This document shows, in pieces, positions 4,646 through 48,682 of a stretch of 64,000 nt of DNA. The position numbers and the translations under genes were made by a program. Under the pieces are notes generated by a model, which was given only the letters and a program-made list of their open reading frames with translations, was not told the origin of the DNA and did no database searches. The stretch's first letter is position 1; each line of letters starts with the position of its first letter. The DNA is taken from the sequence record MZ422438.1; one strand, given 5' to 3'.

Positions 4646-5218
4646 CTATATATTTACAGATTTTATTTTCTTGTCAATCGTTAATGATACTTCAGTCATG
4701 ATAAGCATAATCTTGCTCATAACATATTCCTCAATATGTTCTTCTGAAATGATGGTAGAAACCCTATATTTTAAGTCACTAGACATTCTTTCTACAACTT
4801 CATTAGTACATGATATAACAGATTCTTCAAATTCATCTGTAGTTGTATCGATATCTATATCATCACTAAGTTCACTCTGATCTTCATCAATAGATGTTTC
4901 AGTAGTCGCAGTATTTTCTACATATTCATTTCCTTCATTGTCATACTGAATATTCATACCATTAATTGCAGTAACTTCACTTAATCTAGGAAGTATTCTA
5001 TCAATACTTTCAGCAATTAAATTATTCTTTACTATCCATATGCTAATATCAATAAGAATATCTAATTCCTTTAGTGCTTTTTCACCATCAATATTATTAT
5101 GCATCATTCTATTATTACGGTTAGATTTAATAATCAATCTTCCAATAATTATATGTGTAATAAATATAATTATTAGTATTGAAGGTACTGTAATGTAAAA
5201 TAAATTTGTAGTCATCAA
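4646..5218 (-). CDS. Membrane-anchored acidic hypothetical protein
   Basis: N-terminal hydrophobic helix and acidic body; 190 aa. Confidence 0.6.
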   Translation of the reverse strand: MMTTNLFYITVPSILIIIFITHIIIGRLIIKSNRNNRMMHNNIDGEKALKELDILIDISIWIVKNNLIAESIDRILPRLSEVTAINGMNIQYDNEGNEYVENTATTETSIDEDQSELSDDIDIDTTTDEFEESVISCTNEVVERMSSDLKYRVSTIISEEHIEEYVMSKIMLIMTEVSLTIDKKIKSVNI

Positions 5219-5244
5219 ATAAACTTCCCCTATTCATTTATTAT

Positions 5245-5752
5245 TTATATATAATTATTCATACTAAAAACTTGAATTTTATTTTCTTCTAAGAAAGATA
5301 CAACTTCCTGAGAATTATCATATTCTTCTAAATAATATACTTTAGATATTCCTGAAGCAATAATCGTTTTGGCACAATTAAAGCATGGTGAATGAGTAAT
5401 AAACATTCGATGCGCCTTCTGTATTTCCAGAGTTTCTAGCCACCTTAGATATTGCGTTTATTTCTGCATGTATTTCATATTTTAATGACCATTTATGATG
5501 AATTTCCATATCTTCACATAAATAAAATTTCTTTCCTTGACTTTCAATATAATAATCTTTGCGACAAATGAAATACGATTGTGAAGTATACCATAATCCT
5601 TCTTTCTTTATGAATATATCATTACAGTTAGCGTATCCACTAGGGGTTCCATTAATTCCTGAAGATATAATGGAGTTATTCTTAACAATAATGCAGGAGA
5701 CTTTCTTTGCAGAGCATTTACTTATTTCTGACATTCTTATTGCAATATTCAT
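5245..5752 (-). CDS. dCMP deaminase (one apparent +1 frameshift near 5407)
   Basis: SKCSAKKVSC, SGINGTP and HAEINAI motifs. The PCFNCAKTIIASGI Zn motif continues in the shifted frame to TAA at 5245. Confidence 0.85.
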
Positions 5753-5879
5753 AAAGTTTACTTCGTTTGTCGTAAATAGTCATCCATATTATTATCTTCA
5801 TTATCTATAAATATATCTACCAAGATATGGCCACTGATCTTATTCTAATTATAATAAATTATTTGAAATGATGCATTGT

Positions 5880-7070
5880 TTAAATACTTTTAATTTTCCG
5901 AATGTTAATGTTAATATCAACACGATTTATAAAATTGTCAATTTCTGTATCTGTATTAGAGAACATATTTTCAAAGATATCAAACTTTATAATTCGATAA
6001 AAGCTATCTTGACTTATATAATGTGCAATATTATTAACAATATTATCATTATCTGTAAGATAAAGATACTTCACAACAAGACTAAGCGTTGTTAATATTA
6101 GTCTGTATATTTCTTTTATACGATAATCGTTTATATTTTTATCTATAATTAACGTATCATATGATTCTGTCTGGAAGTTAAATTTATATGTTTCTTGAGA
6201 ATTTACTTTCTTCATCAAACTAATTATAGATACTGCGTTTGATGGCATTTTTTTCACTTTTGGAAATATCAATTCTTTATTATTTATTCTTCTTTTTGTA
6301 TCTTTTATTAATTCATCAATAAATTTTGAAAATTCGGCATTATATAACTCATCATTACTTAGATCCATATTTTTTTGTAGTTCAATATACATTTTAAATT
6401 CTAGTTCCAATCTATTTAATATATGAACTTCATGCTTTGATAATAAGTTAATATATAATACGTTTATTGTAGGAAATTTAATATTGGATTTATCATCAGT
6501 ATCTATATCAGTGGATTCTATATAGTATGATGAGGGTGAAATATAATTTTTATATTTATACATATGCGTATATGAGTAAATAACTAATTCATTAGTATAC
6601 GTAAAATTCATTAAATTATCATTATCATAATTATCCACTTCAATATAGTTGTTTATTATTGCATCTTTTCGACTGATTAACGATCTTTCTTTATTATATT
6701 TGTGCATTATAAAAGAGATATATCTATTATTATTTATATAATTAGATGAATCGATAAACATGTCATATTCTTGTAATTCTTCAAAACATAGTTCTAAAAT
6801 ATTTGCAAGCAATATTTGAATTATATTTCTATTATCTTTTATTTTATTATAACCATAATAATTTTTGTGACTTATCATAGGAATATCTGAAAATATGATG
6901 TAATTTTCAGAAGTAAGAAAAAAATTAGAATTATTTAAATCATTGAAGATACCAGTAATTTTACTGATATCTTCAAGACTTATATTTTTAAATTTTTCAT
7001 AGTTCCATAAATTTCTCACTTTAATATTATGGTTAGCATCAGTATAGAAATATTTAGTATCAATATTCAT
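5880..7070 (-). CDS. Hypothetical protein ending in RKIKSI
   Basis: 396-aa ORF carrying the shared C-terminal motif. Confidence 0.75.
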   Translation of the reverse strand: MNIDTKYFYTDANHNIKVRNLWNYEKFKNISLEDISKITGIFNDLNNSNFFLTSENYIIFSDIPMISHKNYYGYNKIKDNRNIIQILLANILELCFEELQEYDMFIDSSNYINNNRYISFIMHKYNKERSLISRKDAIINNYIEVDNYDNDNLMNFTYTNELVIYSYTHMYKYKNYISPSSYYIESTDIDTDDKSNIKFPTINVLYINLLSKHEVHILNRLELEFKMYIELQKNMDLSNDELYNAEFSKFIDELIKDTKRRINNKELIFPKVKKMPSNAVSIISLMKKVNSQETYKFNFQTESYDTLIIDKNINDYRIKEIYRLILTTLSLVVKYLYLTDNDNIVNNIAHYISQDSFYRIIKFDIFENMFSNTDTEIDNFINRVDININIRKIKSI

Positions 7071-7098
7071 TAACTAATCACTATCCTTATATAATATT

Positions 7099-9950: not shown

Positions 9951-10098
9951 AAATAAATTCCACCAATCTATATTTTTTATTTTATTACTAATTTATAATA
10001 TATATTTATAAATTATTTATAATTGTGTATATCACGCTACTAATTTTGGTTAATGTTTCTTCAAGGTTTAAAAATGAAGAACTTTCTTATCATCATTT

Positions 10099-12578: not shown

Positions 12579-12589
12579 TTACAAGATTA

Positions 12590-12635: not shown

Positions 12636-12646
12636 TTTATAATTAA

Positions 12647-14180: not shown

Positions 14181-14687
14181 ATGTATAGATATATACGTAC
14201 AAACGGTTCTATGCGAAATAAATTGAAAGAAATGAATATTGATAAGAATGACAGTATCTTTGAAAATACTGTTAAGATTATTAATGAATTAATAAATCAT
14301 TTCTATTCAATAAGTGAAGTATTTAACTTCATAGAAAAAGAAAATATTCATATCAATAATGAAGTGATGCAATATTTAAGTTCTGATGAATTTTATAAAT
14401 CTGCATATACTTCGAAAATAATGATGAAGAATCATATGTCTAAACATTCATTTATTCGCATGATAAAAAATGAATTGTGTTATCGTAATATTAGTTTTAT
14501 TTTTAATGATTCATTATTTACTAATGATGATATTGCCACGATAATAGTTAGGAATGATCTAGCTGAAATACCATTTGATATTATGGTTAAGGAAAATCCA
14601 TTAAGCTTGAAAGATTTTAAGAAGACTTTAAGATATAATAATTTAAATGATCATGAAAAATCTATTTTAGAATTACGTAATATTTAA
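14181..14687 (+). CDS. Hypothetical protein ending in ELRNI
   Basis: 168 aa; RBS AAGGAG; shared C-terminal motif. Confidence 0.75.
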   Translation: MYRYIRTNGSMRNKLKEMNIDKNDSIFENTVKIINELINHFYSISEVFNFIEKENIHINNEVMQYLSSDEFYKSAYTSKIMMKNHMSKHSFIRMIKNELCYRNISFIFNDSLFTNDDIATIIVRNDLAEIPFDIMVKENPLSLKDFKKTLRYNNLNDHEKSILELRNI

Positions 14688-14759: not shown

Positions 14760-15764
14760 TTATATATTATATAGGATAATCATATTATATATCTTTAATG
14801 ATGATAATCTGTTGGCTAATTCTGGACTTCTTTTCTCTAATGAATAGATATCGATAGCTTCAATAAGATTAATTACTTTAATAAATCCTAGATTTCGATA
14901 TCTTTTATTTATTAAAACAAAATTAAGTAATTCTATGAATTGTATTAATCTTTCAGCATGATACAACGATTTTATTTTATATTTTTCTTCAACATCAGCG
15001 AGATCTAATCCATATTCTTTGTAGTAATTTTTCTTTAATAGCGGCTTCATCCTACGTATCATGATACTAATATATCTATTAAGTTCATTATAGGTAGTTT
15101 TAGTATTCTTATACACTGCCATTTTATGAGTTTTAAAGTAGTTATATAAGTAATCTATTATATCATTAAAGAAATATTCGTTTGCATAAATAATCTTTAT
15201 AAAACTAGACTTTGGCATAATAATATCTAATATTTTAGGGTTAATCGTAATCCGAGTATTTTCAACCCTTGATAAGAATTTAATATATGTTTCAGTTATA
15301 AATTTATATACAACTTCTGATTCAATATTAAACTTTTCACAAAAATTACATATGACATCATTGATATCATACTTATTATCACAACAGAAGACGTAAGACG
15401 AAATTGTATACAATAATATATATTCAGTATTATTATTATTACTATGACTAATATTATCATATAAATCACTTATCATGATCATCATATTTTCAGGTTTAAT
15501 ATCATATAAATAGAATATATTTTGATAGTATGATAATATTTGTTGACTTTTACGTTTATTATTCTTTAATAAGTACGTAATAATATTCATAGGTAATAAT
15601 GTAACCGATTCCGTATCTTTTTTATCTAATGCCCTATTATTACCTAAGTATGATAAGATATCGATAATATCACCAAAGTTAGAAATATCATTGTATATAT
15701 CTAGTATACTTTCAATGTTTTCATTTAATGACATTGGTTGTAATTTATATTTATACGTTATCAT
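14760..15764 (-). CDS. Hypothetical helical protein ending in LYNI
   Basis: 334-aa ORF. Confidence 0.75.
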   Translation of the reverse strand: MITYKYKLQPMSLNENIESILDIYNDISNFGDIIDILSYLGNNRALDKKDTESVTLLPMNIITYLLKNNKRKSQQILSYYQNIFYLYDIKPENMMIMISDLYDNISHSNNNNTEYILLYTISSYVFCCDNKYDINDVICNFCEKFNIESEVVYKFITETYIKFLSRVENTRITINPKILDIIMPKSSFIKIIYANEYFFNDIIDYLYNYFKTHKMAVYKNTKTTYNELNRYISIMIRRMKPLLKKNYYKEYGLDLADVEEKYKIKSLYHAERLIQFIELLNFVLINKRYRNLGFIKVINLIEAIDIYSLEKRSPELANRLSSLKIYNMIILYNI

Positions 15765-16719: not shown

Positions 16720-17724
16720 TTATATGCTTAACAAATTAATTCGGCTTTTCATTAACTTACATAATTCATCTATTCGTTTAATATTATTAAGAGTGTTCTT
16801 TCTTATTAATGAATTATGATTATCCGCACTAACATTATCTTCATATCTTCTAAATAATTCATAATTATTATTAGTATAATCTATAGAATCCAAAATTTTA
16901 ATACGTGCATTATTTTTTACGCTAGTCATTTTATTATTATTAAAATTAATATATAAGTTTAATAATTCAAAAATAATGGATATTCTATCAATACTGCTTT
17001 CAAATAATATTAGATCATCTTTATTGTTAAAATTAAGATATCTAGATATTCTTAATGCACTATGAGGGTCTATTCCGATAATACTGTTAATTGCTTTTTT
17101 ACTATTAAGTATTATATCTTTCTGATTATCTGTAAAAAATTTAGAATAACCACTACCATATATTGTATTGAATATTTTAGCCATTGATGATTTACTAATA
17201 AATTTTTTAAAATGTTTATCATCAATATCTCTAACGCCATATATCGCACAGAATAGATTGGTTGAATATAGATTCATTTTGTCAATCATAGTTAAATATT
17301 CATTATCTGTAATTGTAGAAGATTCTGAAATGCATGTTTTAAACTTTTCAGATATCCTATTTCTTATACCGAAGTCAGGATCATCGTCATTGGATATATT
17401 GTTATATGTGTCAAATAGTCTAAAAATAATTTTTCTAATGTATGAAGAGTTTATTTGTAAATTACTACTAGTATACTTATACTTCTTACTAGATGGTGAT
17501 ATAATAAAGTCAATTAAATCGTCAAACAGTACACTATACATGGAATTATTATTGATAAATGAATCATATAATTTGTCAATATTCTTCTTAGTAATTATAT
17601 AATTACTATAATTCATACTTCTTTTCGTATATATATGATTAATATTAACATATTGAGTATTATCCATAAAAGTACTAAACAGTTTATTGTATATTACGCT
17701 TGACCTAATACTATATTTAAACAT
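16720..17724 (-). CDS. Hypothetical protein ending in LLSI
   Basis: 334-aa ORF. Confidence 0.75.
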   Translation of the reverse strand: MFKYSIRSSVIYNKLFSTFMDNTQYVNINHIYTKRSMNYSNYIITKKNIDKLYDSFINNNSMYSVLFDDLIDFIISPSSKKYKYTSSNLQINSSYIRKIIFRLFDTYNNISNDDDPDFGIRNRISEKFKTCISESSTITDNEYLTMIDKMNLYSTNLFCAIYGVRDIDDKHFKKFISKSSMAKIFNTIYGSGYSKFFTDNQKDIILNSKKAINSIIGIDPHSALRISRYLNFNNKDDLILFESSIDRISIIFELLNLYINFNNNKMTSVKNNARIKILDSIDYTNNNYELFRRYEDNVSADNHNSLIRKNTLNNIKRIDELCKLMKSRINLLSI

Positions 17725-17738
17725 AATGTAATCCTTTC

Positions 17739-18212
17739 TTAAATATTAATGTCCTTAATATAATGACGTAATAATTCCTCGGATATTCCTAGTTCCTTAG
17801 ACATTACTTCAATAGGTTTGTTAAGATTCTTTTCAATATAGTCTGTTATATATTGTTCTGAACTACGTGAATTACCTACCTTAATATCAGTAGTACTTAA
17901 TGGCATTTTAAACCCAATAGTTCTTGGGTTAGTAATTTTTTCATATTCGGGAACTGGATCATTCTTAATAATATGGTCTGGTAGTTTCATATTATGTTTT
18001 TCTAGGCTACAATTATCCAATCTTTTAAGTTTATCTAATGATTCATTAGTAATGATAATCATTAGATCGTTTCTACTTAGGTCTACTGACATTTCTTTCA
18101 CATTTTCATCATAAAGTAGTGTAGACATATGACTAATAATATCATGTGAATTTTCCAATGTAATATTTTGATCCATATATTTTCTAATATATTCGACTAA
18201 TTTTTTCTGCAT
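17739..18212 (-). CDS. Hypothetical protein with a C-terminal HTH
   Basis: KPIEVMSKELGISEELLRHYI is HTH-like. Confidence 0.55.
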   Translation of the reverse strand: MQKKLVEYIRKYMDQNITLENSHDIISHMSTLLYDENVKEMSVDLSRNDLMIIITNESLDKLKRLDNCSLEKHNMKLPDHIIKNDPVPEYEKITNPRTIGFKMPLSTTDIKVGNSRSSEQYITDYIEKNLNKPIEVMSKELGISEELLRHYIKDINI

Positions 18213-20482: not shown

Positions 20483-21121
20483 CTAAATATTTATCATACT
20501 AATAATATTATCTAATTTTTCACTTTTAACAATATTTTCATTTAATACTAAAACATCATTTATATATGGAAAACATTCTGTAATGTGTTTAATTATAAAT
20601 TCTGACGTAATAGATCTTTGATTCATTAGTACTTCTTTATGATTTAATTTATACCAGTATATTTCAATAAAGTCAATTGACAACTTTTGTCTTCTTGATA
20701 TAATATCCCAACAATCATCATCAATATATACTGATATAAGTTCATATAGCGTTTTTTCATCAAGATTAGCATAATAGATATTCTTCTTCATATATTGGGA
20801 AAACTTTATTAAGAATTCCTTACTATAGTTACAATGCATAACAATATGACTATCCCAAGGAATAAAATCTATATTTTGAGAGTATTCTTCAATTGTCATG
20901 TGTTTGTATATACTATGATCAATATATTCCCAAAATATTTTAGTTTGGTTTTTAGTAATAAATTTCATATACATTTTATTATATTTCACCCGATAACTAA
21001 ATCTAAACCATTCAGGATCATTTATATCTTCTTTTTTAGTCATATCAAGATTAAATAAGACCCCAATAAATAATCTTAGTTGATTTATAAATCGACCTTT
21101 ATACGTGTCCATTATATTCAA
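20483..21121 (-). CDS. Protein with degenerate Trp repeats
   Basis: CWDIISRRQKLSIDFIEIYWYKLN matches the 22-aa repeat; ends in MINI. Confidence 0.7.
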   Translation of the reverse strand: MNIMDTYKGRFINQLRLFIGVLFNLDMTKKEDINDPEWFRFSYRVKYNKMYMKFITKNQTKIFWEYIDHSIYKHMTIEEYSQNIDFIPWDSHIVMHCNYSKEFLIKFSQYMKKNIYYANLDEKTLYELISVYIDDDCWDIISRRQKLSIDFIEIYWYKLNHKEVLMNQRSITSEFIIKHITECFPYINDVLVLNENIVKSEKLDNIISMINI

Positions 21122-31236: not shown

Positions 31237-31830
31237 TTAAATACTTTTTAATTTATTAATATCAATTAATTTCTTTTTCATACTTTCAGGTAATATTTCA
31301 TCATGATACTTTAATATTAAAGGAATATTTAATTTATCAATATACGTATCAATAAATTCTAGTGATATATCTTGACATTTGCTAATAATATCCCAATTAA
31401 CTTTATCTTGAAACTCAATAATAAAGTCTTCTGATAATGTCTGGTACCAACTAATAAAGTACCAATCTAAAGAATCTTTGAATCTACGAATAAAATCTTC
31501 TGATAATTTCTGTTGTGAACTAATATTATACCAATCTAATTCATCTTGGAACCTTTCAATAAATTCTTCTGATAATGTCTCGATACCTACTGATGCTAAA
31601 CCAGTTTAATTTATCTTGAAACTTTTCAATGAATTCTTCTGATAACTCTTGATGTATGCTGATGCTAGACCAGTTTAATTTATCTTGAAACTTTTCGATA
31701 AATTCTTCGGATAATTTCTGTTGTGAACTAATATTATACCAATCTATTTTATCCTGAAACTTCTCAATGAATTCTTCTGATAATGTCTGATTCCTACTGA
31801 CATGATTCCTATTAATGGTTATTTTTCCAT
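31237..31830 (-). pseudogene. Trp-repeat protein with one +1 frameshift near 31580 (missing from the ORF track)
   Basis: MEKITINRNHVSRNQTLSEEFIEKFQDKIDW...; an extra G in TATCGAGAC; the shifted frame ends LIDINKLKSI. Confidence 0.8.
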
Positions 31831-31897
31831 AAATAAGTATACCACCTTTTTGCTATATACTTTTTAATTTAATAATTTCTTTATGTTTATTAATAAA

Positions 31898-32740
31898 TTA
31901 TCGTGATACATTTTGAATCGATTCAATATAATGCCAATTTACTTTATTCTGAAACTTCTCAATAAACTTTTCCGAAAATTTCTGTTCTCTACTGATATAA
32001 CTCCAATTTACTTTATCTTGAAATTTTTCGATGAATTCTTCTGATAGTTTTTGGTCAGACGATATATAGTCCCAATCTACTTTATCTTGAAACTCTTCGA
32101 TGAATTTTTCGGATAATCTCTGATATATACTAATATGCTTCCAATTAACTTTATCTTGAAATTTTCTAATTAATTCTTCTGATAATTTCTGGCATAAACC
32201 AATATAATGCCAATCTACTTTATCCTGAAACTTCTCAATGAATTCTTCGGATAATTTATAATATTCAGAGATACTACACCAATTAACTTTATCCTGAAAC
32301 TTTTCAATAAACTGCTCAGATAATTTCTGATATGAACTAATATTGTACCAAACTACTTTATCCTGATATTTAGAAATAAAATTTTCTGATAAGTTCTTTT
32401 GATCCCTACTAATATTGTACCAAACTACTTTATCTTGAAACTCTTCAATAAACTGCTCAGATAATGTCTGATACCAACTAATATTGTACCAATTAACTTT
32501 ATTCTGATATTTAGAAATAAAATTTTCTGATAAGTTCTTTTGATCCTTACTAATATAATACCAATCTACTTTATCCTGAAACTTTTCAATGAATTCTTCT
32601 GATAATTTTTGATGTGAGCTAATATATTTCCAATCTACTTTATCCTGAAACTTTTCAATGAATTCTTCGGATAATTTTTTCTTCCAACTAATCTCAGTCC
32701 AATCTACTTTTACTGAATCATCAACGATTATTTTATCCAT
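31898..32740 (-). CDS. Trp-repeat (22-aa solenoid) protein
   Basis: About 12 repeats; lacks the family C-terminal cap. Confidence 0.9.
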   Translation of the reverse strand: MDKIIVDDSVKVDWTEISWKKKLSEEFIEKFQDKVDWKYISSHQKLSEEFIEKFQDKVDWYYISKDQKNLSENFISKYQNKVNWYNISWYQTLSEQFIEEFQDKVVWYNISRDQKNLSENFISKYQDKVVWYNISSYQKLSEQFIEKFQDKVNWCSISEYYKLSEEFIEKFQDKVDWHYIGLCQKLSEELIRKFQDKVNWKHISIYQRLSEKFIEEFQDKVDWDYISSDQKLSEEFIEKFQDKVNWSYISREQKFSEKFIEKFQNKVNWHYIESIQNVSR

Positions 32741-32768: not shown

Positions 32769-33458
32769 CTATATACTTTTTAATTTATCAATAGCAATCA
32801 ATTTATCCATTGTTTCTTCAGATAGTGTATCTTCGTATCTATATATTAGATATTTAACGTATAATTTATGCATATATCTAATAATGAATTCTTCCGATAA
32901 TTCTTGATGCATACTAATAGCTTTCCAATTAATTTTATCCTGAAACTCTTCAATAAAATTTTCAGACAATGTCTGATATTTGCTAATTTCATTCCAATCT
33001 ACCATATCCTGACAGTTACGAATAAAATCTTCTGATAAGTCTCGAACTGACGAAGAAGCATGCCGCCAATTAACATTTTCTGGAAATTTTAGAATAAGGT
33101 CATTAGATACATTTCTATTTAAGCAAAAATAATCCCAACATATCTTATCTTGAAATTTGGCAATAAATGATTCACTATTTAATTTCTGATGCATACTGAT
33201 TTCATTCCAATTAACTCTATCCTGAAACTCTTCAATGAATTCTTCTGATAGTTTTTGGTCAGACGATATATATTGCCAATTAACTTTATCTTGATATTTA
33301 CGAATAAATTTTTCCGATAATTTTTGGTATTGACTTATAATATCCCAGTTTAATTTATCTTGATATTTAATGATAAACTTTTCAGGCAATTCTTCATTAT
33401 ATGCAATATATTCCCAGTTAGGTTCAACAGTAAAATTATATTTTTCATTATACTTCAT
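32769..33458 (-). CDS. Trp-repeat protein
   Basis: About 9 repeats; ends DKLKSI. Confidence 0.9.
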   Translation of the reverse strand: MKYNEKYNFTVEPNWEYIAYNEELPEKFIIKYQDKLNWDIISQYQKLSEKFIRKYQDKVNWQYISSDQKLSEEFIEEFQDRVNWNEISMHQKLNSESFIAKFQDKICWDYFCLNRNVSNDLILKFPENVNWRHASSSVRDLSEDFIRNCQDMVDWNEISKYQTLSENFIEEFQDKINWKAISMHQELSEEFIIRYMHKLYVKYLIYRYEDTLSEETMDKLIAIDKLKSI

Positions 33459-33483: not shown

Positions 33484-34116
33484 TTATATATTCTTCATTA
33501 TAGTAATATTAGTCAGCTTATCTATAGTTTTCTGAGATAACGAGTTTTTATGAATTTCAAGTACGAATTCAATATCCAAGCAATGAATATTCCTAAGAAT
33601 AAAATCATCTGACAATTTCTGGTATTGGATAATAAAATCCCAGTACACTTTATTTCCAAAATTTTCAATGAATTCTTCTGATAATTTTTGATATTGGGAA
33701 ATATTATACCAATTAACTCTATCTTGAAACTCAATAATAAAGTCTTCTGATAATGTCTGGTACCAACTAATTTCATTCCAATCTACTATATTCTGACAAT
33801 TACGAATAAGATCTTCTGATAGCTTTTGGTTTATACTGATGTAGTACCAATTAACTCTATCCTGAAACTTAATAATAAATGAATCAGATAATTCCTGAAA
33901 TATACTAATATATTTCCAATTAACCATGTCTTGATATTTATGGATAAGTTTTTCTGATAATTTCTGTTTTATACTAATAAAGTCCCAATCTAATTTGTCT
34001 TGAAAAGTATCAATAAATTTTTCATTCAACATTATGTTCTTAGATATGTATGTCCAATCAATTTTATCATCATTTATGTTAATATCATTAGTTTTAATGT
34101 ACTCGTTAATATTCAT
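33484..34116 (-). CDS. Trp-repeat protein
   Basis: About 8 repeats; ends TIMKNI. Confidence 0.9.
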   Translation of the reverse strand: MNINEYIKTNDININDDKIDWTYISKNIMLNEKFIDTFQDKLDWDFISIKQKLSEKLIHKYQDMVNWKYISIFQELSDSFIIKFQDRVNWYYISINQKLSEDLIRNCQNIVDWNEISWYQTLSEDFIIEFQDRVNWYNISQYQKLSEEFIENFGNKVYWDFIIQYQKLSDDFILRNIHCLDIEFVLEIHKNSLSQKTIDKLTNITIMKNI

Positions 34117-34262: not shown

Positions 34263-34964
34263 TTATATATGTCTTAATGCATCAATTTCCTCTAATCTAT
34301 TTATGAATTCTTTAGATAATGATTCTGAATTATTATTTATTATTGAACTAATCGATACTTTATCAATATGATTATTAATAAATTCTTCTGATAATTGTTG
34401 CTCTCCACTAATAACGTTCCAATTAACTTTATCTTGAAATTTATCAATAAAAGATTCCGATAATGTCTGATATCTACTAATATAGTACCAACTAAGTTTA
34501 TCTTGAAATTTCTCAATGAATTCTTCTGATAATTGTTGATCTGTACTAATAACATCCCAGTCTACTTTATCCTGATATTTACGAATAAATTTTTCCGATA
34601 ATATTTGGTATTGACTTATAATATCCCAGTTTAATTTATCTTGAAATTTCTCAATGAATTCTTCTGATAATTTCTGTTGTGAACTAATAATGTACCAATC
34701 TATTTTATCTTGGAACCTTTCAATGAATTCTTCTGATAATTTTCGATACCTGCTGATGCTAGACCAGTTTAATTTATCTTGGAACTTCTCAATGAATTCC
34801 TCAGATAATTCTTGATGTATACTGATGCTAGACCAGTTTAATTTATCTTGGAACTTCTCAATGAATTCCTCAGATAACTTTTGATTTCTACTAATATCAT
34901 ACCAATCTAATTTATTTTTCAGATTATTAATAAAATCTTTATCATCTAAGTTTTTATTTTTCAT
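34263..34964 (-). CDS. Trp-repeat protein
   Basis: About 9 repeats; ends DALRHI. Confidence 0.9.
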   Translation of the reverse strand: MKNKNLDDKDFINNLKNKLDWYDISRNQKLSEEFIEKFQDKLNWSSISIHQELSEEFIEKFQDKLNWSSISRYRKLSEEFIERFQDKIDWYIISSQQKLSEEFIEKFQDKLNWDIISQYQILSEKFIRKYQDKVDWDVISTDQQLSEEFIEKFQDKLSWYYISRYQTLSESFIDKFQDKVNWNVISGEQQLSEEFINNHIDKVSISSIINNNSESLSKEFINRLEEIDALRHI

Positions 34965-34991: not shown

Positions 34992-35897
34992 TTAAACATG
35001 TCTTAATTTATTAATTTCTTTTAATTTATCTACAAATTCTTTAGATAATGATTTTGAATTGTATTGTAGTAATGCTTCAAGATTTAATTTATTTAGATAT
35101 TTATGGATAAATGTCTTAGATAACTTTTGGTTTCTACTAATAGACTCCCAGTTTAATTTATCCTGAAACTTAATGATAAATTCTTCTGATAATACTTGAC
35201 ATGCACCAATATATTGCCAGTTAATCCTATTTTGGAACTTCTCAATGAATTCTTCTGATAATTGTTGCTCTTCACTAATAACGTCCCAATCAATTTTATC
35301 TTGAAATTTATCAATAAAAGTTTCAGATAATTTTTGGAACCGACTAATTAAGTACCAATTTACATTACTCTGAAACTCTTCAATAAATTCTTCTGATAAC
35401 TTTTGATGTTCACAGATTAAAAGCCAATTTACATTACTCTGAAATTTACGAATAGATTCTTCAGATAATTTTTGAGATCGACTAACTTGACTCCAGATTA
35501 ATTTATTTTGAAACTTACTAATAAATTCTCCTGACAGTTTTTCACATTGAGATATATAATACCAATCCAATTTATCTTGGAACTTCTCGATAAACTCTTC
35601 AGATAATTTTTGATATGTTACAATAAAATCCCAGTCAACAGTATTCTGAAACTTATCAATAAAAGTTTCAGATAATTTTTGATATATGCTGATATAAAAC
35701 CAATTAACTTTATCTTGGAATTCTTCGATGAATTCTTCTGATAGTTTTTGGTATATACTGATATTTGACCATACTACTTTATCTTGGAATTTTCTAATAA
35801 AGTCTTCAGATAATGTACGTTTTTCACATAATAACCCCCAATTAATCTTTTCGGGGAATTCACTTATAAACTCTTCGGTTAGGTTTTTATTCCACAT
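34992..35897 (-). CDS. Trp-repeat protein
   Basis: About 12 repeats; ends NKLRHV. Confidence 0.9.
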   Translation of the reverse strand: MWNKNLTEEFISEFPEKINWGLLCEKRTLSEDFIRKFQDKVVWSNISIYQKLSEEFIEEFQDKVNWFYISIYQKLSETFIDKFQNTVDWDFIVTYQKLSEEFIEKFQDKLDWYYISQCEKLSGEFISKFQNKLIWSQVSRSQKLSEESIRKFQSNVNWLLICEHQKLSEEFIEEFQSNVNWYLISRFQKLSETFIDKFQDKIDWDVISEEQQLSEEFIEKFQNRINWQYIGACQVLSEEFIIKFQDKLNWESISRNQKLSKTFIHKYLNKLNLEALLQYNSKSLSKEFVDKLKEINKLRHV

Positions 35898-35929: not shown

Positions 35930-36976
35930 TTAGATACTTTTTATTTTATTAATTTGAATTAGTTTATTTAACAATTGAGGTGATAATAATTCTGAATTGT
36001 ACTGTATTAGGTGTTCAATATTTAATTTATTTAAATGATTATAGATAAACTTCTCAGATAATTTTTGATATCTGCTAATATAATCCCAATTAACTTTATC
36101 TTGGAACTTAATGATAAAGTTTTCTGATAGTTTTTGATATTGACTTGTAGCATCCCAATCAAGCTTATTCTGAAAATCAGTGATGAATTCTTCCGATAAT
36201 ATTTGATATTGACTAACATCCTCCCAATCATTTATCATATCTTGAAACTTAATGATAAAGTTTTCTGACAATTTATGATAAATTACGACTAAGTACCAAT
36301 TAAGTTTATATCTAAATTTTTCGATGAATTCTTCTGATAATTTTTGATCTCCACTAATAGTATGCCAATCAATATTGTCCTGAAGTTCTTCGATGAATTC
36401 TTCGGATAATTCTTGATATTCACTAATATTAATCCAATTAACTTTATCTTTAAATCTAGCAATAAAGTCTTCTGATAATTTCTGATATTGGCTTATATTA
36501 TACCAATCTACATTGTTTTGAAATTCTTCAATAAAGTCTTCCGATAATTCTTGATATCGACTAATAATATCCCATTTTAAATTATTCTGGAATTTACGGA
36601 TAAAGTCTTCCGATAATTCTTGATATCGACTAATAATATCCCATTTTACATTATTCTGGAATTTGCGAATAAAGTCTTCTGATAATTTCTGATATTCACT
36701 AATATTAGTCCAGTCAACTTTATCTTGAAATTCGATAATAAATTTCTTTGATAGTTTTTGATGTTTAGAAATACTGTGCCAATTTACTTTATCTTGAAAC
36801 TCACGGATAAATTTTTCCGATAATTTTTGATATTTACTAACGTCTGTCCATCTAATAATATCTTGATATTCACGGATAAAATCTTCAGGCAACTTAACAC
36901 ATGATACCGTAGTATACCAATCATAACCAAACCTTTCAAGTGTTACGTGACTTATATTATTATTGACTGTTTCCAT
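35930..36976 (-). CDS. Trp-repeat protein
   Basis: About 14 repeats; ends NKIKSI. Confidence 0.9.
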   Translation of the reverse strand: METVNNNISHVTLERFGYDWYTTVSCVKLPEDFIREYQDIIRWTDVSKYQKLSEKFIREFQDKVNWHSISKHQKLSKKFIIEFQDKVDWTNISEYQKLSEDFIRKFQNNVKWDIISRYQELSEDFIRKFQNNLKWDIISRYQELSEDFIEEFQNNVDWYNISQYQKLSEDFIARFKDKVNWINISEYQELSEEFIEELQDNIDWHTISGDQKLSEEFIEKFRYKLNWYLVVIYHKLSENFIIKFQDMINDWEDVSQYQILSEEFITDFQNKLDWDATSQYQKLSENFIIKFQDKVNWDYISRYQKLSEKFIYNHLNKLNIEHLIQYNSELLSPQLLNKLIQINKIKSI

Positions 36977-37126: not shown

Positions 37127-37888
37127 TCAGCACATATTCATCATATCATTAATAATACGCTTTCTCTCTTTTTTTGATACAATGTAATACGTGTTATCAA
37201 TATAATTAAATTCTTTAATAAAATCTTCCGATAATATTTGATATCGACTTATAATATCCCAGTTTACATTATCTTGAAACTCATGGATAAAATCTTCAGA
37301 TAATTTTTGGTACATACTAATATAATCCCAATCTACTTTATCCTGAAATTCTCTAATAGAGTCTTCTGACAATCTTTGATATATGCTAATATTTTCCCAG
37401 TCTACATTATCTTGGAATTCTTCAGATAATTTTTGATACCTTGAAGATTGATACAAATTTGTAATTTTATTATATTCAATATTAATATCATTGTTATATT
37501 TGATATCGCTATCATGATTATCATTATTATTTAGTGATAACACATGATTTTTATCTTTTATAACATTATCATATTTTGGAATATACAATATTAAGGGATC
37601 ATTATTACTATTATCATCTAGATTTTTTGAAATTTCAATATTAGCGGAATTAGATTTAATTTTATCAATATATACTTTATTTCTAAATTCTATAATAAAC
37701 TTTTTGGATAGTTTTTGCGAATTGGATAATTTTTGTGAAAATATAAGATGTTCCCAATATAATTCCGATTCATATTTTCTTATAAATTCTTCAGACAATC
37801 CTCTGGTTCTATCAATCATGTTCCAATTTAAATTATATGGATTAAGTTCGACAATCTCTTCGACAGTATAATAACAATTAATATCCAT
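37127..37888 (-). CDS. Trp-repeat protein with a non-repeat insertion
   Basis: Repeats flank an Asn/Asp-rich spacer; first gene of the array. Confidence 0.8.
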   Translation of the reverse strand: MDINCYYTVEEIVELNPYNLNWNMIDRTRGLSEEFIRKYESELYWEHLIFSQKLSNSQKLSKKFIIEFRNKVYIDKIKSNSANIEISKNLDDNSNNDPLILYIPKYDNVIKDKNHVLSLNNNDNHDSDIKYNNDINIEYNKITNLYQSSRYQKLSEEFQDNVDWENISIYQRLSEDSIREFQDKVDWDYISMYQKLSEDFIHEFQDNVNWDIISRYQILSEDFIKEFNYIDNTYYIVSKKERKRIINDMMNMC

Positions 37889-37941: not shown

Positions 37942-37954
37942 AATTATAATATAT
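37942..37954 (-). promoter_or_regulatory. Early-type promoter element upstream of the Trp-repeat array
   Basis: ATATATTATAATT on the minus strand, 54 nt upstream of 37888. Confidence 0.45.
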
Positions 37955-38174
37955 ATTTATCCTATAAGTTATAAAAAAAAAAATCAAACGTGATATATAA
38001 TGATTATCACGTTTGATATGTAATTATTTTTTAAGAATGTTTAATAGTCTTAGAGAATATTCTAAATATTTAGATTGATTTTTTACATTGTAAGTTATTA
38101 ATAATAATAATGAAGAGAGAAGGAACAGATCTCCTGATTTACAATAATCTTTTTGATATTTTCCATACATTACA

Positions 38175-39485: not shown

Positions 39486-39677
39486 TCAGATATTTCTCAA
39501 TTCTCTGATCTTAACTAATTTACGCTTTATTTTATTAGATATTAGTTTATCATGTGATATCAATAGATCAATATCTAATTTCTTGAAGAATATATTAATG
39601 AATTCTTCTGATAAATTTTCACAATATATAGATTTGCCCTTCCAGTTGATTGTACTATTATTTTCAATAGATAAGTA
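39486..39677 (-). other. Start-less 63-codon ORF: one Trp repeat plus the family cap, in frame behind the stop of 39678-40175
   Basis: YLSIENNSTINWKGKSIYCENLSEEFINIFFKKLDIDLLISHDKLISNKIKRKLVKIRELRNI*. Confidence 0.6.
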
Positions 39678-40175
39678 TTAATCTTCAGTTAGATCAATAA
39701 TATCTTCAAGATGTGAACCAAAAGTAGAATAGTCTATTAACCATATTTCTTTTAATGGGTCTTCTTCAAGAAAGATTGCAATATCTTTTGCATGTTTCTT
39801 AATTTTATCCACAATATAATTATACGTTCGATCAGCACCACTAGGATTCTTAATGGATCTTAGAAAAACGTCATCATAAGATTCAGTTTCAATAATATGA
39901 TATCCTTCATAAGTTTTATTTCCTTTTTGTAACGTCACCGATCTTAATACACTTTTTCGAGTTTCTTTAATGCCAATTAGGTCAGCTAAATTAATTACTT
40001 CTTTTTTATTCAGATCAATTCCATTTTCTAGTACAAAAGGAACTGGTTGTAGGTTCTCGTATTCCTCATCATCAATATCACTTAGTGAATTAATATATTC
40101 TAAAGCATCATTATATGATTTAAATACCTTATGTTTATTCTTTTCCGTATTAGTAATTTTATATTTGATTGTCAT
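39678..40175 (-). CDS. Hypothetical protein
   Basis: 165-aa ORF with RBS AAGGGA. Confidence 0.7.
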   Translation of the reverse strand: MTIKYKITNTEKNKHKVFKSYNDALEYINSLSDIDDEEYENLQPVPFVLENGIDLNKKEVINLADLIGIKETRKSVLRSVTLQKGNKTYEGYHIIETESYDDVFLRSIKNPSGADRTYNYIVDKIKKHAKDIAIFLEEDPLKEIWLIDYSTFGSHLEDIIDLTED

Positions 40176-41501: not shown

Positions 41502-41666
41502 AGAACCAACCTTATAGTAAAAATTATATATAAAGAATAAAAAATCTATATAATTTACCTTCGGTATAAGGATTGTTACATAGAAGGAAAGATCTACATA
41601 TTTTTATTAAAAAGCATATATGGATTTATAGTTAAGTCAGAACCAACCCTATAGTAAAAATTATAT
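41502..41666. repeat. Two 28-nt direct repeats in a ~590-nt non-coding gap
   Basis: AGAACCAACCYTATAGTAAAAATTATAT at 41502 and 41639 (1 mismatch). Confidence 0.85.
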
Positions 41667-41861
41667 TAATAATTATATTTTATTATGAGTTTAATGCTTC
41701 GTTGTAAGAATCTTTACATGCACGGATAAATTATAGTTAATTGTTATGTATAATATATCCAAGCATGTAAGGTTTCTTAGATTATTTTTATTTTTTATTA
41801 TTTTAATAACTAATAAAGATATTAAACTTAATTTATTTCGTTATATATAATATTAAAGTAA

Positions 41862-46903: not shown

Positions 46904-47021
46904 CCTTTTTATTTTTTAGGTTTTTTATTTACAAACAGTAGAATAATAATGGCAACGCCAATTCCAATAATTGCAGGAAGTAAATCTTTAAATATATCCA
47001 TGTCGAATCACCTTTTATATT

Positions 47022-47639
47022 TTATTTTTTGTATACATATTCCGTATCATAATTTTCAATAATAAGTTTAACAGTTCCATGAGAAACTCCAAGAGATCTT
47101 GCAATCTTAGCAATTGAAAATTCAGGATGTTCCATTATAATATTATTAACAGATTCTATAATTTTTTCATTAGTTAAAGAATTATTAGACATATTAACTT
47201 GGTTATACGTTGCGATACTAAATTTATATTCTTCAAATAGACTAATAATATATTCTTCGGAGAATCCTGTATCTTCAGATAATCTTGCTGGAGTCATAAT
47301 ATCATTACTGTCTAATACAATTTTACTTAATCTTTTAAAGTCTGATAATCGTGTATCAATCTTCATATCTGAAATGCTCATTTTTTGAAGTCTAATAGAT
47401 GAAATATCTTTTCCTTCTTCTTTCATAATTCTTCTAATAGTTGATTTTGCAATTGAAAATTCAACATTACATTTTTCAGCAATTTCTAATATTGTCATTT
47501 CAGGATTATTACGATAAGTATAAATAATATCTTTAGTCATCTTACTAAATTTATCATTATGCTCATAAGTTTCTCTTCTCTCTCTTCTTTGTCTTCTTCT
47601 ACTTTCTGCACTTGTTAAAACATTTTGACTCATTACCAT
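47022..47639 (-). CDS. Multi-HTH DNA-binding protein
   Basis: NPEMTILEIAEKCNV and HPEFSIAKIARSLGVSHGTVKLI. Confidence 0.65.
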   Translation of the reverse strand: MVMSQNVLTSAESRRRQRRERRETYEHNDKFSKMTKDIIYTYRNNPEMTILEIAEKCNVEFSIAKSTIRRIMKEEGKDISSIRLQKMSISDMKIDTRLSDFKRLSKIVLDSNDIMTPARLSEDTGFSEEYIISLFEEYKFSIATYNQVNMSNNSLTNEKIIESVNNIIMEHPEFSIAKIARSLGVSHGTVKLIIENYDTEYVYKK

Positions 47640-47718
47640 GATAATCTTCCACCCTTTTTAATTAATTTAATAAATTGTATTAATATAAGATTATAAAGTA
47701 TATCTATGATAGTTTAAA

Positions 47719-48300
47719 TTAAATATATTGTAATCGTTTATCACATGCCTGAATTACAATAGCATCCCATAAAGCATTATGTTTATCTTCATTTACTATG
47801 ACATTAATATATTCACTAGCAAATTCTTCACGATTAATATCCGGATCAATATTTTTAGTTCTAAATACTGTAGAAATATCATAATAGTACATGTCAACAA
47901 ATTCTGGAATTAATGTAGCATCTTTTCCTTTATTAATTAGATCCACAAATAACATCCAATCGTATGCCATTAAGTCACTAACAAATACTAGTTTTTCAGA
48001 ACTATGCTTAGCATTATATGATAACCATTCGATAATTTTATCAGAAACTTCATCTTTAGTTCCATATACTATAGTTGTCTTAGCATTATCCGATTTTGAT
48101 GCTAATGCGTCATGTTTGTTAAAAAATCGAAGTTTAGGAATAACATTATCATTCACCCAAACACTTGATTTCGTTGTATCAAAATTAGATACTTCCGCAT
48201 AAAATAGTCTACCGTACGTATCTACCATTCCAATACTAATTAGGTCGGCATCTTTTGTTAAATTTGTAAATTCTGTATCAAAATATATCTTATTATCCAT
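47719..48300 (-). CDS. DEDDh 3'-5' exo(ribo)nuclease (Rv2179c/DUF5051-like)
   Basis: IYFDTEFT, LISIGMV, AYDWMLF and HNALWDA motifs. Confidence 0.8.
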   Translation of the reverse strand: MDNKIYFDTEFTNLTKDADLISIGMVDTYGRLFYAEVSNFDTTKSSVWVNDNVIPKLRFFNKHDALASKSDNAKTTIVYGTKDEVSDKIIEWLSYNAKHSSEKLVFVSDLMAYDWMLFVDLINKGKDATLIPEFVDMYYYDISTVFRTKNIDPDINREEFASEYINVIVNEDKHNALWDAIVIQACDKRLQYI

Positions 48301-48325
48301 AATGTACCAACTTTCTTTAATTTGT

Positions 48326-48682
48326 CTATATATTTCTCAATATAATACTTGATAAGAAATTATTGAATTCTTTTATTAATCGATCTAGCGCCTTATCATT
48401 AAGTAATGAATTTATATTTATAAATATGGATTGATTATCAATAAATTTATTGATATCTTTTATATCTATAACAATTAAGAACTTACCATTATCATCTTTA
48501 TATAAAGAACTATTGATTGATTCTAATTTTTTATTTATATATAACATTTTACCATCAACAATAAATTTAGGGTTAGTATACACTAATTGAAACATACCAT
48601 TAGAACATTTCGATTCAATAGGTAAATATTTATACATCTTATATTCATCTATAGATATAATATCAATAATGCATGTAAACAA
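48326..48682 (-). CDS. Hypothetical protein ending in ILRNI
   Basis: 118-aa ORF with the shared C-terminal motif. Confidence 0.6.
   Translation of the reverse strand: MFTCIIDIISIDEYKMYKYLPIESKCSNGMFQLVYTNPKFIVDGKMLYINKKLESINSSLYKDDNGKFLIVIDIKDINKFIDNQSIFININSLLNDKALDRLIKEFNNFLSSIILRNI

Follow-up and report, generated by a model that had tools for sequence, protein, structure and literature searches.

A shared C-terminal helix in the tryptophan repeat gene family and other accessory proteins of Listeria phage LPJP1

Proteins that end in the same few residues may do so through common ancestry, a common function or chance, and the left end of the LPJP1 genome raises this question for a whole block of accessory genes. 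The window analyzed here, 64,000 nucleotides, is identical in sequence to bases 1–64000 of MZ422438.1, the record of Listeria phage LPJP1, an AR9/PBS1-like jumbo phage of Listeria grayi with uracil-DNA. A preliminary description of the window had listed 17 C-termini, most of them ending in Ser, Asn or His followed by Ile ([S/N/H]-I), and had proposed that they form a common signal on mostly unrelated proteins. All 17 are present as written. Counting only ORFs that do not overlap and are 60 aa or longer, 14 of 86 carry the ending, where composition predicts 2.2 (binomial P 3.6e-8). At internal positions the frequency of the dipeptide is 2.8%, and it directly precedes 3.0% of stop triplets when all frames are counted, so the excess is not produced by AT bias or stop context, an objection that the preliminary description had itself raised. 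Ile is the last residue in 23 proteins where 11 are expected, and the [S/N/H]-I set explains this surplus. All 14 endings lie within a minus-strand accessory block at 4.6–48.7 kb (13 before 40 kb, the other at 48 kb); from 64 to 223 kb the count falls to chance level, with 3/134 against 2.7 expected. The recognizable core genes lack the ending, as had been stated, and the carriers are located away from structural genes. We confirm the shared ending as a real protein-level feature.

A scan with the AR9 early-promoter consensus (PMC5312081) returned three exact matches:

9995–10007, minus strand: exact consensus match
14123–14135, minus strand: exact consensus match
37946..37958, minus strand: exact consensus match, intergenic

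When up to one mismatch is allowed, the minus strand has 14 matches, eight of them intergenic. Given the exact matches, the genes of the accessory block are probably early.

The tryptophan repeat gene family and its terminal helix

Of the 17 listed ends, nine are those of a single paralogous family, the tryptophan repeat gene family, and come from seven genes and two remnants; this removes over half of the list from the "mostly unrelated" carriers; the members at 20483 and 22919 had gone unrecognized. In the accessory block the family has expanded to nine genes and two remnants, and a 62-aa mini-gene outside the block consists of the end module alone. The architecture is one of 23-residue repeats in tandem, marked by a conserved Trp, and membership is based on a BLASTP cluster, a repeat HMM, periodicity (z 7–24) and hhalign matches to the end module (96–99.5%):

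20483..21121, minus strand: degenerate family gene, 212 aa, ending SMINI (BLASTP cluster, end-module HMM, hhalign)
22919..23707, minus strand: degenerate family gene, 262 aa, ending TIMNI (BLASTP cluster, end-module HMM, hhalign)
31237..31897, minus strand: broken family copy, last piece ending KLKSI, with no CDS annotated in the record
31898..32740, minus strand: tail-less family gene, 280 aa, ending right after a canonical repeat
32769..33458, minus strand: family gene, 229 aa, ending KLKSI (repeat HMM, periodicity, hhalign)
33484..34116, minus strand: family gene, 210 aa, ending IMKNI, the member with a predicted structure
34263..34964, minus strand: family gene, 233 aa, ending ALRHI (repeat HMM, periodicity, hhalign)
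34992..35897, minus strand: family gene, 301 aa, ending KLRHV (repeat HMM, periodicity, hhalign)
35930..36976, minus strand: family gene, 348 aa, ending KIKSI (phrog_3532 match, E 1.4e-112)
37127..37888, minus strand: family gene, 253 aa, whose end (MMNMC) is divergent and untagged
39486..40175, minus strand: 165-aa ORF of unrelated body, then, in frame with it, 63 codons of a family end-module remnant with the ending ELRNI

The gene at 32769 has nine stretches that fit the repeat-unit HMM, seven without doubt (E 4.9e-74), a lag-23 periodicity of z 11.5 and an end-module hhalign probability of 99.5%. At least 1710 database homologues are found for 34263, and tblastn places relatives of 35930 in phages BpSp, G, c-st and AgentSmith as well as in Gram-negative jumbo phages. 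In the H-V end of 34992, Val replaces Ile. Both degenerate genes fall inside the family BLASTP cluster and match the end module by HMM and hhalign (E 3.3e-5 and 96% for 20483; E 4.2e-5 and 97.9% for 22919), and both of these known members fail the periodicity test. The copy at 31237, which has no start codon, retains homologous pieces in two reading frames with seven repeat units in total, so it has suffered at least one break (frameshift). The remnant at 39486, unannotated and likewise without a start codon, comprises one repeat unit and the end module; if 39486..40175 was formerly one gene, it has been broken once, by a stop, an in-frame layout that would arise by accident with one-in-three odds. 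The tail-less gene at 31898 shows that family members can do without the tail.

The AlphaFold2 model of 33484 (mean pLDDT 93.9) shows each repeat as a pair of short helices and closes with a terminal helix at residues 195–209, with pLDDT 95 and 88 for the final two blocks; it has no PDB fold match with E <0.1. The family is thus confidently predicted to be an α-solenoid of 23-residue repeats, and in this high-confidence prediction the "tag" forms the end of its closing helix. Since the start of that helix is patterned like the first helix of the repeat unit, the helix resembles one last repeat in modified form. More generally, what was described as a tag is the final turn of an amphipathic C-terminal helix of ~13–18 residues, with which the family usually ends, and the earlier claim that such a helix precedes the ending stands. 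The six most informative positions of the tail (−1, −4, −5, −8, −11 and −12) lie inside a 120-degree arc of the helical wheel: −1 is aliphatic, −4 is Leu/Met, −5 is Lys, −8 is Thr/Ser, and −11 and −12 are charged. The hydrophobic positions that vary (−3, −6, −7, −10 and −14) occupy the opposite arc.

Carriers outside the family in LPJP1 and BpSp

When the family is removed, 8/56 ORFs in the block still have the ending versus 3/155 elsewhere (Fisher P 0.0014), where ~1.4 of the eight would be expected by chance. N-I is then the most enriched terminal dipeptide of the block (5 versus 0.62 expected; P 4e-4, a value that loses significance under strict correction across all terminal dipeptides), and S-I ends number 3 versus 0.5 expected. 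With the exception of 5880, no relatives were detected for these eight carriers, which are listed here, seven of them with their rank among 218 LPJP1 C-termini under a tail matrix built from Bacillus phage BpSp:

4646..5215, minus strand: orphan, 189 aa, N-terminal hydrophobic segment, weak tail ending KSVNI (rank 37)
5880..7070, minus strand: 396-aa protein ending RKIKSI (matched by an HMM of AR9 g030-036/BpSp gp088-091)
14181..14687, plus strand: orphan, 168 aa, ending ILELRNI (rank 5)
14760..15764, minus strand: orphan, 334 aa, ending IILYNI (rank 15)
16720..17724, minus strand: orphan, 334 aa, ending INLLSI (rank 7)
17739..18212, minus strand: orphan, 157 aa, ending IKDINI (rank 21)
30077..30634, minus strand: orphan, 185 aa, weak tail ending MILESI (rank 41)
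48326..48682, minus strand: orphan, 118 aa, ending IILRNI (rank 18)

The protein at 5880 is a probable homologue of AR9 g030-036 and BpSp gp088-091, judged from profile matches: it is the top LPJP1 hit of their HMM (E 0.0031 in 220 proteins), and hhalign aligns 161 collinear columns at a probability of only 8.9%. A word search of 5.8 billion proteins returned no homologue of it. Its tail fits the LPJP1 family-tail matrix (p 0.0007), as does that of 48326 less closely (p 0.03), with p 0.14 for 30077 and 0.41 for 4646; the last two are possibly chance members of the set, in which one or two accidental tails are expected. An exhaustive search with 14181 matched only itself, and its C-terminus aligns to the family end module with an hhalign probability of 0.4%; its single-sequence model, the sole one for an orphan, is all-α with a terminal helix at 157–166 and a pLDDT of only 55. 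For 14760 no relatives were found in IMG/VR and no match in Pfam or PHROG, and 17739 gave no Pfam, PHROG or family match.

The orphan tails are individually weak, with scores from 3 to −11 versus 3 to 19 for the BpSp families. As a set they are distinct: scored only over positions −14 to −3 of the BpSp repeat-family matrix, without the last two residues, the eight carriers outscore other LPJP1 C-termini (P 3.7e-5, or 4.4e-5 minus 5880), and only 1 of 5001 column permutations matched or beat the observed score (P 2e-4). [S/N/H]-I is found in 4 of the 10 best-scoring non-family C-termini versus 11/208 overall (P 8e-4). In LPJP1 the tail bearers outside the family are 5880 and roughly four to six of the seven orphans. 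Because the periodicity test is blind even to 20483 and 22919, the unrelatedness of the orphans may reflect undetected homology, and they may be very diverged family members.

In BpSp, the record of which labels the homologues of the LPJP1 family "tryptophan repeat gene family protein", the tail is far more widespread: 74 of 299 ORFs score at or above 0, including ten outside the matrix training set (gp233-242, scores 11.8–21.1). Beside ~50 repeat-family genes, three non-repeat families (22 genes: gp108-119, gp088-091 and gp165-173) bear it. In profile–profile comparisons of bodies with the last 20 residues cut off, most repeat-family groups match one another at a probability of 92–99.9%, whereas the three other families match neither the repeat family nor each other (<1% throughout). 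Their tails nonetheless fit a matrix built from the repeat family only (Mann-Whitney P 8e-8, 9e-7 and 3e-13). The claim that the ending sits on unrelated proteins thus survives for bodies without detectable homology, in LPJP1 and far more clearly in BpSp, and fails for the nine family ends. Elsewhere, C-termini scoring at or above 0 number nine in the LPJP1 window, one in the rest of LPJP1, five in AR9 (all from a single family) and none of 59 in MarsHill 1–50 kb. In these counts, the distribution of the tail across phages follows the repeat family.

Selection on the tail and its possible role

Codon usage speaks to the level at which the ending is maintained. In LPJP1 the tail codons vary (Ser AGT/AGC/TCC, with AGC in 16720 and TCC in 30077; Arg CGT/AGA; Ile ATA/ATT/ATC), and all three stop codons are used. 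In BpSp the information sits in codon positions 1 and 2 (at codon −8, 2.06 bits at position 2 versus 0.28 at position 3) and drops to ~0.1 bit per base right past the stop across 56 tails; no conservation downstream of the stop was seen in the LPJP1 carriers either. This pattern places selection on the protein rather than the DNA. A promoter, terminator, ribosome-site context or recombination site overlapping gene 3′ ends is accordingly contradicted, and we give it next to no credence, even though AAT ATA TAA-type ends resemble AT-rich promoter elements, the stop of 4646 overlaps an early-promoter match that has one mismatch, and both ATA as the final codon (9/16 versus 29% usage) and TAG as the stop are used in excess. 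A promoter-like match touches only 1 of the 17 ends, and the motif precedes other-frame stops at the rate predicted by composition.

At the protein level, the same ending on unrelated LPJP1 proteins and on a quarter of BpSp genes looks like a reusable end piece. Our leading interpretation, to which we commit only tentatively and at a little under an even chance, is that the tail is a modular docking or assembly helix that joins many early accessory proteins to one partner. The hydrophobic, variable face would pack onto the attached body, while the conserved face would form a common binding surface across unrelated bodies; the tail would thereby recruit many different early accessory proteins to a single partner, and it would have spread within these genomes by duplication and the fusion of new bodies onto an existing 3′ end. 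A search for a phage-encoded hub specific to tail-bearing phages found none beyond the repeat family itself, which is also the only protein set common to LPJP1 and BpSp yet missing from AR9. The literature searched did not describe the tail or its occurrence on non-family proteins. For the PDZ-type hub among the earlier suggestions, the class I motif calls for S/T at the third-last residue, which 0 of the 17 ends have.

The most serious competitor, which we regard as rather unlikely, combines paralogy with chance: the tail would be only a structural cap that members of one fast-evolving superfamily inherit, with no shared function beyond folding, and the remaining carriers would be unrecognizably diverged members or accidental [S/N]-I ends in an Ile- and Asn-rich proteome. 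It draws strength from the nine family ends, from the decay of 20483 and 22919 to a loss of periodicity, from the ~1.4 accidental endings expected in the block, from a terminal helix that is predicted with high confidence to belong to the fold, and from a wider family that does not keep this end. Against it stand the block-confined excess of non-family carriers, the fit of their upstream residues to another phage's matrix, and BpSp, where the tail sits on gp108-119, a small family that looks α/β by sequence, and on two more families dissimilar to the solenoid, with the polar Thr −8 and Lys −5 kept across these different bodies. A C-terminal degron, an aliphatic, basic-flanked end through which a C-terminus-reading protease of host or phage would degrade early accessory proteins at a set time, is improbable. 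Non-polar C-termini, as well as the C-terminal signals of the ssrA tag and MuA transposase, are read by ClpX-type machines, the tail is always at the extreme C-terminus with an aliphatic last residue, the LPJP1 carriers lie in a probable early block, and in AR9 and BpSp the g030-036/gp088-091 family has genes for an AAA ATPase and a metallopeptidase immediately upstream. Yet the solenoid tail is confidently predicted to be helical rather than floppy, its one-faced periodic conservation reaches 13 residues back, beyond the needs of known short degrons, no search returned a known degron, and a quarter of BpSp genes would carry one. Packaging of tail-bearing proteins into the capsid for injection with the DNA, one of the functions first suggested, is more improbable still. 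Jumbo phages of this group do package many proteins, including a virion RNA polymerase (PMC5312081), and a signal common to otherwise different proteins would suit such a role. The AR9 record, however, labels proteins found in virions "virion protein", and its tail bearers (g030, g031 and g034-036) lack the label and lie downstream of annotated early promoters; the LPJP1 carriers similarly sit in a block with AR9-type early-promoter matches, apart from the structural genes.

Comparison with known systems

In how it may work, the tail resembles the end of the ankyrin-repeat proteins of poxviruses, a fast-evolving multigene family in which a C-terminal PRANC/F-box-like helical module docks one host partner. 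Both are large repeat-scaffold families of a big virus with a short, conserved C-terminal helical module; the sequences are unrelated, Pfam shows no PRANC or F-box in LPJP1, the bacterial hosts have no SCF ligase, and the LPJP1-type module is also found on non-repeat bodies. In dockerin–cohesin pairs and encapsulin cargo-loading peptides, a small C-terminal module brings unrelated proteins to one scaffold. The phage tail shares the placement of a C-terminal module on otherwise unrelated proteins, but it is a single helix, has no sequence or domain match to these systems, and no scaffold or shell partner was found. The ssrA tag and the MuA end, signals for bacterial AAA+ proteases, are short, unstructured and at the extreme C-terminus. 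The tail resembles them in position, in its aliphatic or small last residue and, in some classes, in basic residues upstream; it differs in being a 13-residue periodic helix within a predicted fold, and no search returned a relation.

AR9 g030-g036 and BpSp gp088-091, the only tail-bearing family with AR9 relatives, share with 5880 a similar length, collinear weak profile matches and Arg-Val at −14/−13 followed by a hydrophobic-periodic end; the profile match to 5880 is weak, and the AR9 ends are more acidic and score lower on the tail matrix. The tryptophan repeat gene family, named from the annotations of BpSp and phage G (phrog_3532, phrog_11920 and phrog_22019), includes the nine LPJP1 genes and two remnants as clear members. 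In most of its at least 1710 database homologues a different small domain closes the protein, and the K/R-S/N/H-I helical tail of LPJP1 is a lineage variant, from which the end of the phage G members differs by one residue.

Enrichment of the ending in the LPJP1 window

The window is identical in sequence to bases 1-64000 of MZ422438.1, the 223,580-bp genome of Listeria phage LPJP1 (host Listeria grayi), a jumbo phage whose DNA probably contains uracil (PMC8460666) and whose capsid and RNA polymerase genes link it to the Staphylococcus jumbo phages and to the Bacillus phages AR9, PBS1 and BpSp. Its G+C content is ~24%. Between 4.6 and ~50 kb the minus strand carries nearly all of the genes, and almost every one of them has a hypothetical annotation. 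The 17 C-termini for which the preliminary description proposed a shared terminal tag all exist in the window (carriers are named here by their lowest window coordinate), and the excess of [S/N/H]-I endings is borne out: they close 14 of the 86 ORFs of at least 60 aa, against 2.2 expected (P 3.6e-8). Composition and stop context fail to account for this excess, because the [S/N/H]-I dipeptide makes up 2.8% inside the window proteins and precedes 3.0% of stop triplets of any frame; the enrichment therefore persists when AT bias and stop context, the sources of artifact that had been named beforehand, are used as background. The remaining 160 kb of LPJP1 has 3 such endings in 134, with 2.7 expected, and the enrichment is demonstrably local to the window.

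We take the minus-strand accessory gene block (~4.6-48.7 kb) to be probable early genes because it contains matches to the early-promoter consensus published for AR9 (PMC5312081). The exact matches are:

9995-10007, minus strand, intergenic, exact AR9 early-promoter consensus
14123-14135, minus strand, intergenic, exact AR9 early-promoter consensus
37946-37958, minus strand, intergenic, exact AR9 early-promoter consensus

With one mismatch or fewer, the window has 14 minus-strand matches, eight of them between genes; the 11 that carry one mismatch include five that are intergenic. The total of 17 AR9 early-promoter matches in the window is not above the 11.8 +/- 3.3 of shuffled sequence. Judged by sequence, these matches suggest that the AR9-type virion-RNA-polymerase promoter has been kept in LPJP1. 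Promoter overlap was rejected as the source of the gene ends: 16 of the 17 stops have no consensus match, the sole case being the stop of 4646, which overlaps a one-mismatch match.

Several other features of the region were noted. Where the genes 14181-14687 (+) and 14760-15764 (-) converge, 14701-14742 looks like a bidirectional intrinsic terminator: a perfect inverted repeat of 17 bp encloses an 8-nt loop, with an A-run on one side and a T-run on the other. The tight packing of genes in the block is interrupted at 40958-41861 and 50765-51629, each just under 1 kb long and lacking a convincing ORF, and the five N bases of the window (1021, 1831, 2936, 3960 and 4607) are the same in the public record.

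The tryptophan repeat gene family and its terminal helix

The carriers had been described as mostly unrelated, a view that does not survive comparison of the proteins with one another: by BLASTP, repeat HMM and end-module profile, nine of the 17 ends, two remnants included, belong to one family. An all-against-all BLASTP of the ORFs places 20483, 22919, 31898, 32769, 33484, 34263, 34992, 35930 and 37127 in a single group, and the family is represented in the window by:

31898, 32769, 33484, 34263, 34992, 35930 and 37127, clear members with ~23-residue tandem repeats carrying a conserved Trp
20483 and 22919, degenerate members
31097-31897, stretch without an annotated gene, with a remnant of seven repeat units (31237-31897) broken by at least one frameshift
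39413-39677, stretch without an annotated gene, with a remnant of one repeat unit (39486-39677), a 63-codon end module

In the seven clear members a repeat-unit HMM matches 8-13 stretches per protein (E 4e-40 to 5e-141) and periodicity at lag 23 reaches z 7.5-24; the two degenerate members are tied in by BLASTP links and by an end-module profile probability of 96% and 98% (hhalign). The 39486 remnant stands in frame behind a 165-aa ORF with an unrelated body; if the two were ever one gene, a stop would be the single break between them. Broken genes were never translated across a stop, each piece being searched separately. BLASTP between the LPJP1 family and members in BpSp gives 2e-21 to 2e-58, and "tryptophan repeat gene family" is the name used, with no function assigned, in the BpSp record and the phage G paper. 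The family has at least 1710 database relatives and matches PHROGs without assigned function; no relative was found in Pfam, NCBIfam or the PDB, where a sequence search returned nothing below E 0.07.

Alignment of the paralogues, and of their end modules with those of BpSp, gives a constant order at the C-terminus: the last canonical repeat, a degenerate repeat lacking the Trp, and a final stretch whose beginning resembles a repeat unit's first helix and which continues as one longer helix up to the stop. AlphaFold2, run on the paralogue alignment, models the product of 33484-34116 as a confident alpha-solenoid (mean pLDDT 93.9). Each repeat is predicted to form two short helices, and residues 195-209 a terminal helix of 15 residues; pLDDT is 95 and 88 in the last two blocks. 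Foldseek found no PDB match to this model below E 0.1, the best (0.13) being a generic helical-repeat likeness.

Residue counts in the C-terminal tails (positions counted back from the C-terminus)
LPJP1 repeat family, nine tails
-1: I 8, V 1
-2: N 4, S 3, H 2
-3: K or R 7
-4: L 5, M 2, I 2
-7: I 8
BpSp, 66 tails
-1: L 31, I 25, V 9
-4: L 49, M 12
-5: K 46
-8: T 44, A 9
-11: K 29, E 20
-13: T 20, D 14, S 12

Within the family the "tag" is a terminal helix particular to a lineage rather than a universal signal, since two members, 31898 and 37127, lack it and most database relatives end otherwise: among the 120 best database relatives of 34263-34964, 48 end in D or E and 11 in I. Most relatives have instead a small C-terminal domain of another kind, well conserved and with an acidic last residue; some lie on contigs of 100-300 kb, and the record of one assigns it to a firefly genome. 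Outside the window, among late-region genes of LPJP1, a 62-aa gene (140609-140797) consists of the family end module alone and ends in ...NLTRI, and its neighbour, a 238-aa gene (141848-142564), has the tail-like end ...SVIDLKLV.

Tails on other proteins in LPJP1 and BpSp

The excess of non-family carriers in LPJP1 is moderate: outside the repeat family the ending occurs on 8 of 56 block ORFs vs 3 of 155 ORFs elsewhere (Fisher P 0.0014), N-I endings among the block's non-family ORFs number 5 vs 0.62 expected, and ~1.4 of the eight carriers would be expected by chance. These eight (4646, 5880, 14181, 14760, 16720, 17739, 30077 and 48326) are orphans, without a match in the rest of the genome (BLASTP), Pfam, PHROG or NCBIfam; 5880 has no relative among 5.8 billion proteins, 14181 none in an exhaustive 1.84-billion search, and neither 5880 nor 14760 has one in IMG/VR. 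Hidden membership of the repeat family was considered and rejected, the repeat-unit HMM and end-module HMMs of 25, 45 and 60 residues being negative. Comparison of the last 80 residues with the end module by hhalign stayed below 3% (controls 96-99.5%), and no lag-23 signal was found, in a test that also misses the known degenerate members 20483 and 22919. A single-sequence model of 14181 was poor (pLDDT 55).

When scored with a matrix of the LPJP1 family tails over positions -12 to -3 alone, the eight orphans come out above internal [S/N/H]-I sites (Fisher-combined P 2e-5) and above other C-termini (P 5e-4), the signal coming mainly from 5880, 14181 and 48326. Taken one by one the orphan tails score weakly, and the inclusion of 4646 and 30077 may be due to chance.

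The BpSp genome (KT895374) gives a larger sample, as dozens of its accessory proteins share one 13-residue C-terminal helix. A BpSp tail matrix scores 74 of 299 ORFs at >=0, and ten of these, left out of matrix building, still reach 11.8-21.1. The repeat superfamily supplies about 50 of the tail bearers; the non-repeat tail families are gp108-119 (~135 aa, with an alpha/beta look from sequence), gp088-091 (345-440 aa) and gp165-173. Once their last 20 residues are removed, profile-profile comparison of these three with the repeat groups and among themselves gives probabilities <1%, and a matrix made from repeat tails alone still matches their tails (P 8e-8 for gp108-119, 9e-7 for gp088-091 and 3e-13 for gp165-173). 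No relative of gp165-173 or gp108-119 was found among LPJP1 proteins.

LPJP1 and BpSp tails align across 12 residues without a gap; both have Lys at -5, charged residues at -12 and -11, and hydrophobic ones at -10, -7, -4 and -1. Applied to LPJP1, the BpSp matrix provides a test independent of the choice of carriers in the preliminary description. Of 218 LPJP1 C-termini its top eight are six family members together with 14181 and 16720; over positions -14 to -3 it places the eight orphans above the rest (P 3.7e-5, or 4.4e-5 without 5880), a score reached by 1 of 5001 column permutations; and among the ten best non-family C-termini four end in [S/N/H]-I, vs 11 of 208 overall (P 8e-4).

C-termini scoring >=0, by genome
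LPJP1 window: 9
Rest of LPJP1: 1
AR9: 5, all of the g030-036 family
Phage G, 40-kb piece: 1
Staphylococcus phage MarsHill, 1-50 kb: 0 of 59

A profile of AR9 g030-036 and BpSp gp088-091 finds 5880 as its best LPJP1 match, weakly (E 0.0031), and hhalign aligns 161 collinear columns at a probability of just 8.9%; 14760, 15761 and 16720 were rejected as LPJP1 equivalents of the AR9 family (hhalign <0.5%). In the AR9 and BpSp early operons, genes for an AAA ATPase and a metallopeptidase lie just upstream of this 345-440 aa tail-bearing family (AR9 g028-g036, piece 21938-30840; BpSp gp083-gp091, piece 11812-20938), and no Pfam-recognisable counterpart of the pair was found in the LPJP1 window.

For the most part, then, the tail in LPJP1 is the helix that closes a known repeat family, here expanded. 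As for a tail on unrelated proteins, the claim holds very clearly in BpSp and modestly in LPJP1, where the majority of carriers form one family and the eight others are without detectable membership. By sequence, the best reading of these eight is that unrelated bodies bear the same helix.

Candidate roles of the tail

The constraint on the tail is at the protein level: synonymous codons vary and information drops after the stop. LPJP1 tails use AGT, AGC and TCC for Ser, CGT and AGA for Arg, and ATA, ATT and ATC for Ile; all three stop codons occur, and ribosome-site-like purine runs are the one common downstream element. Across 56 BpSp tails it is codon positions 1 and 2 that hold the information, which drops to ~0.1 bit per base directly past the stop. 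A signal in the DNA, such as a recombination boundary, is hence disfavoured and was rejected, there being no conservation past the stop and free synonymous variation. Some codon preferences were observed: TAG stops are over-used after BpSp tails (27/74 vs 44/225, P 0.004) and stand at 5/17 after LPJP1 tails vs 14/86 overall, and ATA encodes the final Ile in 9 of 16 LPJP1 tails vs 29% in general usage; the TAG and ATA over-use may simply follow paralogy.

Plotted on a helical wheel, the six positions with the most information (-1, -4, -5, -8, -11 and -12) fall within a 120-degree arc, with the variable hydrophobic positions -3, -6, -7, -10 and -14 on the opposite side. The variable face would thus pack on the protein's own body, and the conserved face would form a shared binding surface; most likely the tail is a modular docking helix for one common, putative partner. 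The principal rival, a purely structural family cap plus chance, draws on the single family that makes up the majority of carriers and on the weakness of individual orphan tails, but polar Thr -8 and Lys -5 are kept across unrelated bodies, which argues for more than a hydrophobic cap. A C-terminal degron is a further rival: the tail may resemble ClpX-type C-terminal degrons, which are recognised and degraded through their terminal residues. Searches returned no named relative. The head packaging or ejection signal put forward in the preliminary description is disfavoured on indirect evidence: the AR9 relatives g030, g031 and g034-036 lie downstream of annotated early promoters and carry no "virion protein" label in the AR9 record. 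PDZ-type docking, also suggested there, does not fit. PDZ-binding ends have Ser/Thr third-last with a hydrophobic last residue (class I) or a hydrophobic third-last residue (class II), and the 17 ends do not conform to these classes: ten have K or R as the third-last residue, six a hydrophobic residue and one E, while S and T are absent from this position.

Non-family bodies with tails are abundant only in LPJP1 and BpSp, the two genomes with the repeat family, which is the only gene set common to both and missing from AR9; tblastn with the family found no member in AR9 or the Staphylococcus phages. Tail residues also drift together within each phage, position -2 being S/N/H in LPJP1 and mostly E/D in BpSp. 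It is conceivable, if rather unlikely in our estimate, that the tail is an address label read by the tryptophan-repeat solenoids or by another hub; proteome comparison found no phage-encoded hub specific to tail-bearing phages. Such a tail-and-receptor network, itself phage-encoded, would gather unrelated early accessory proteins in one assembly and would cover ~8% of LPJP1 genes and ~25% of BpSp genes.

No description of the tail was found in the literature searched. Most early accessory genes in jumbo phages are orphans, and a C-terminal helix conserved at the protein level would offer a handle for their study: it would mark orphans that probably act together, predict a common partner and give the first functional clue to the widespread tryptophan repeat gene family, and the tail matrix is a simple sequence test with which tail-bearing proteins can be sought in other genomes. 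Should the tail be merely a structural cap, the finding shrinks to the expansion, in one lineage, of a family already known. Neither the family members nor the orphans have a Pfam match at their C-termini to the poxvirus-type PRANC/F-box module (E up to 0.1). The tail is a helix common to a large repeat family and, as best read, to unrelated bodies in two phage lineages, one of Listeria and one of Bacillus.
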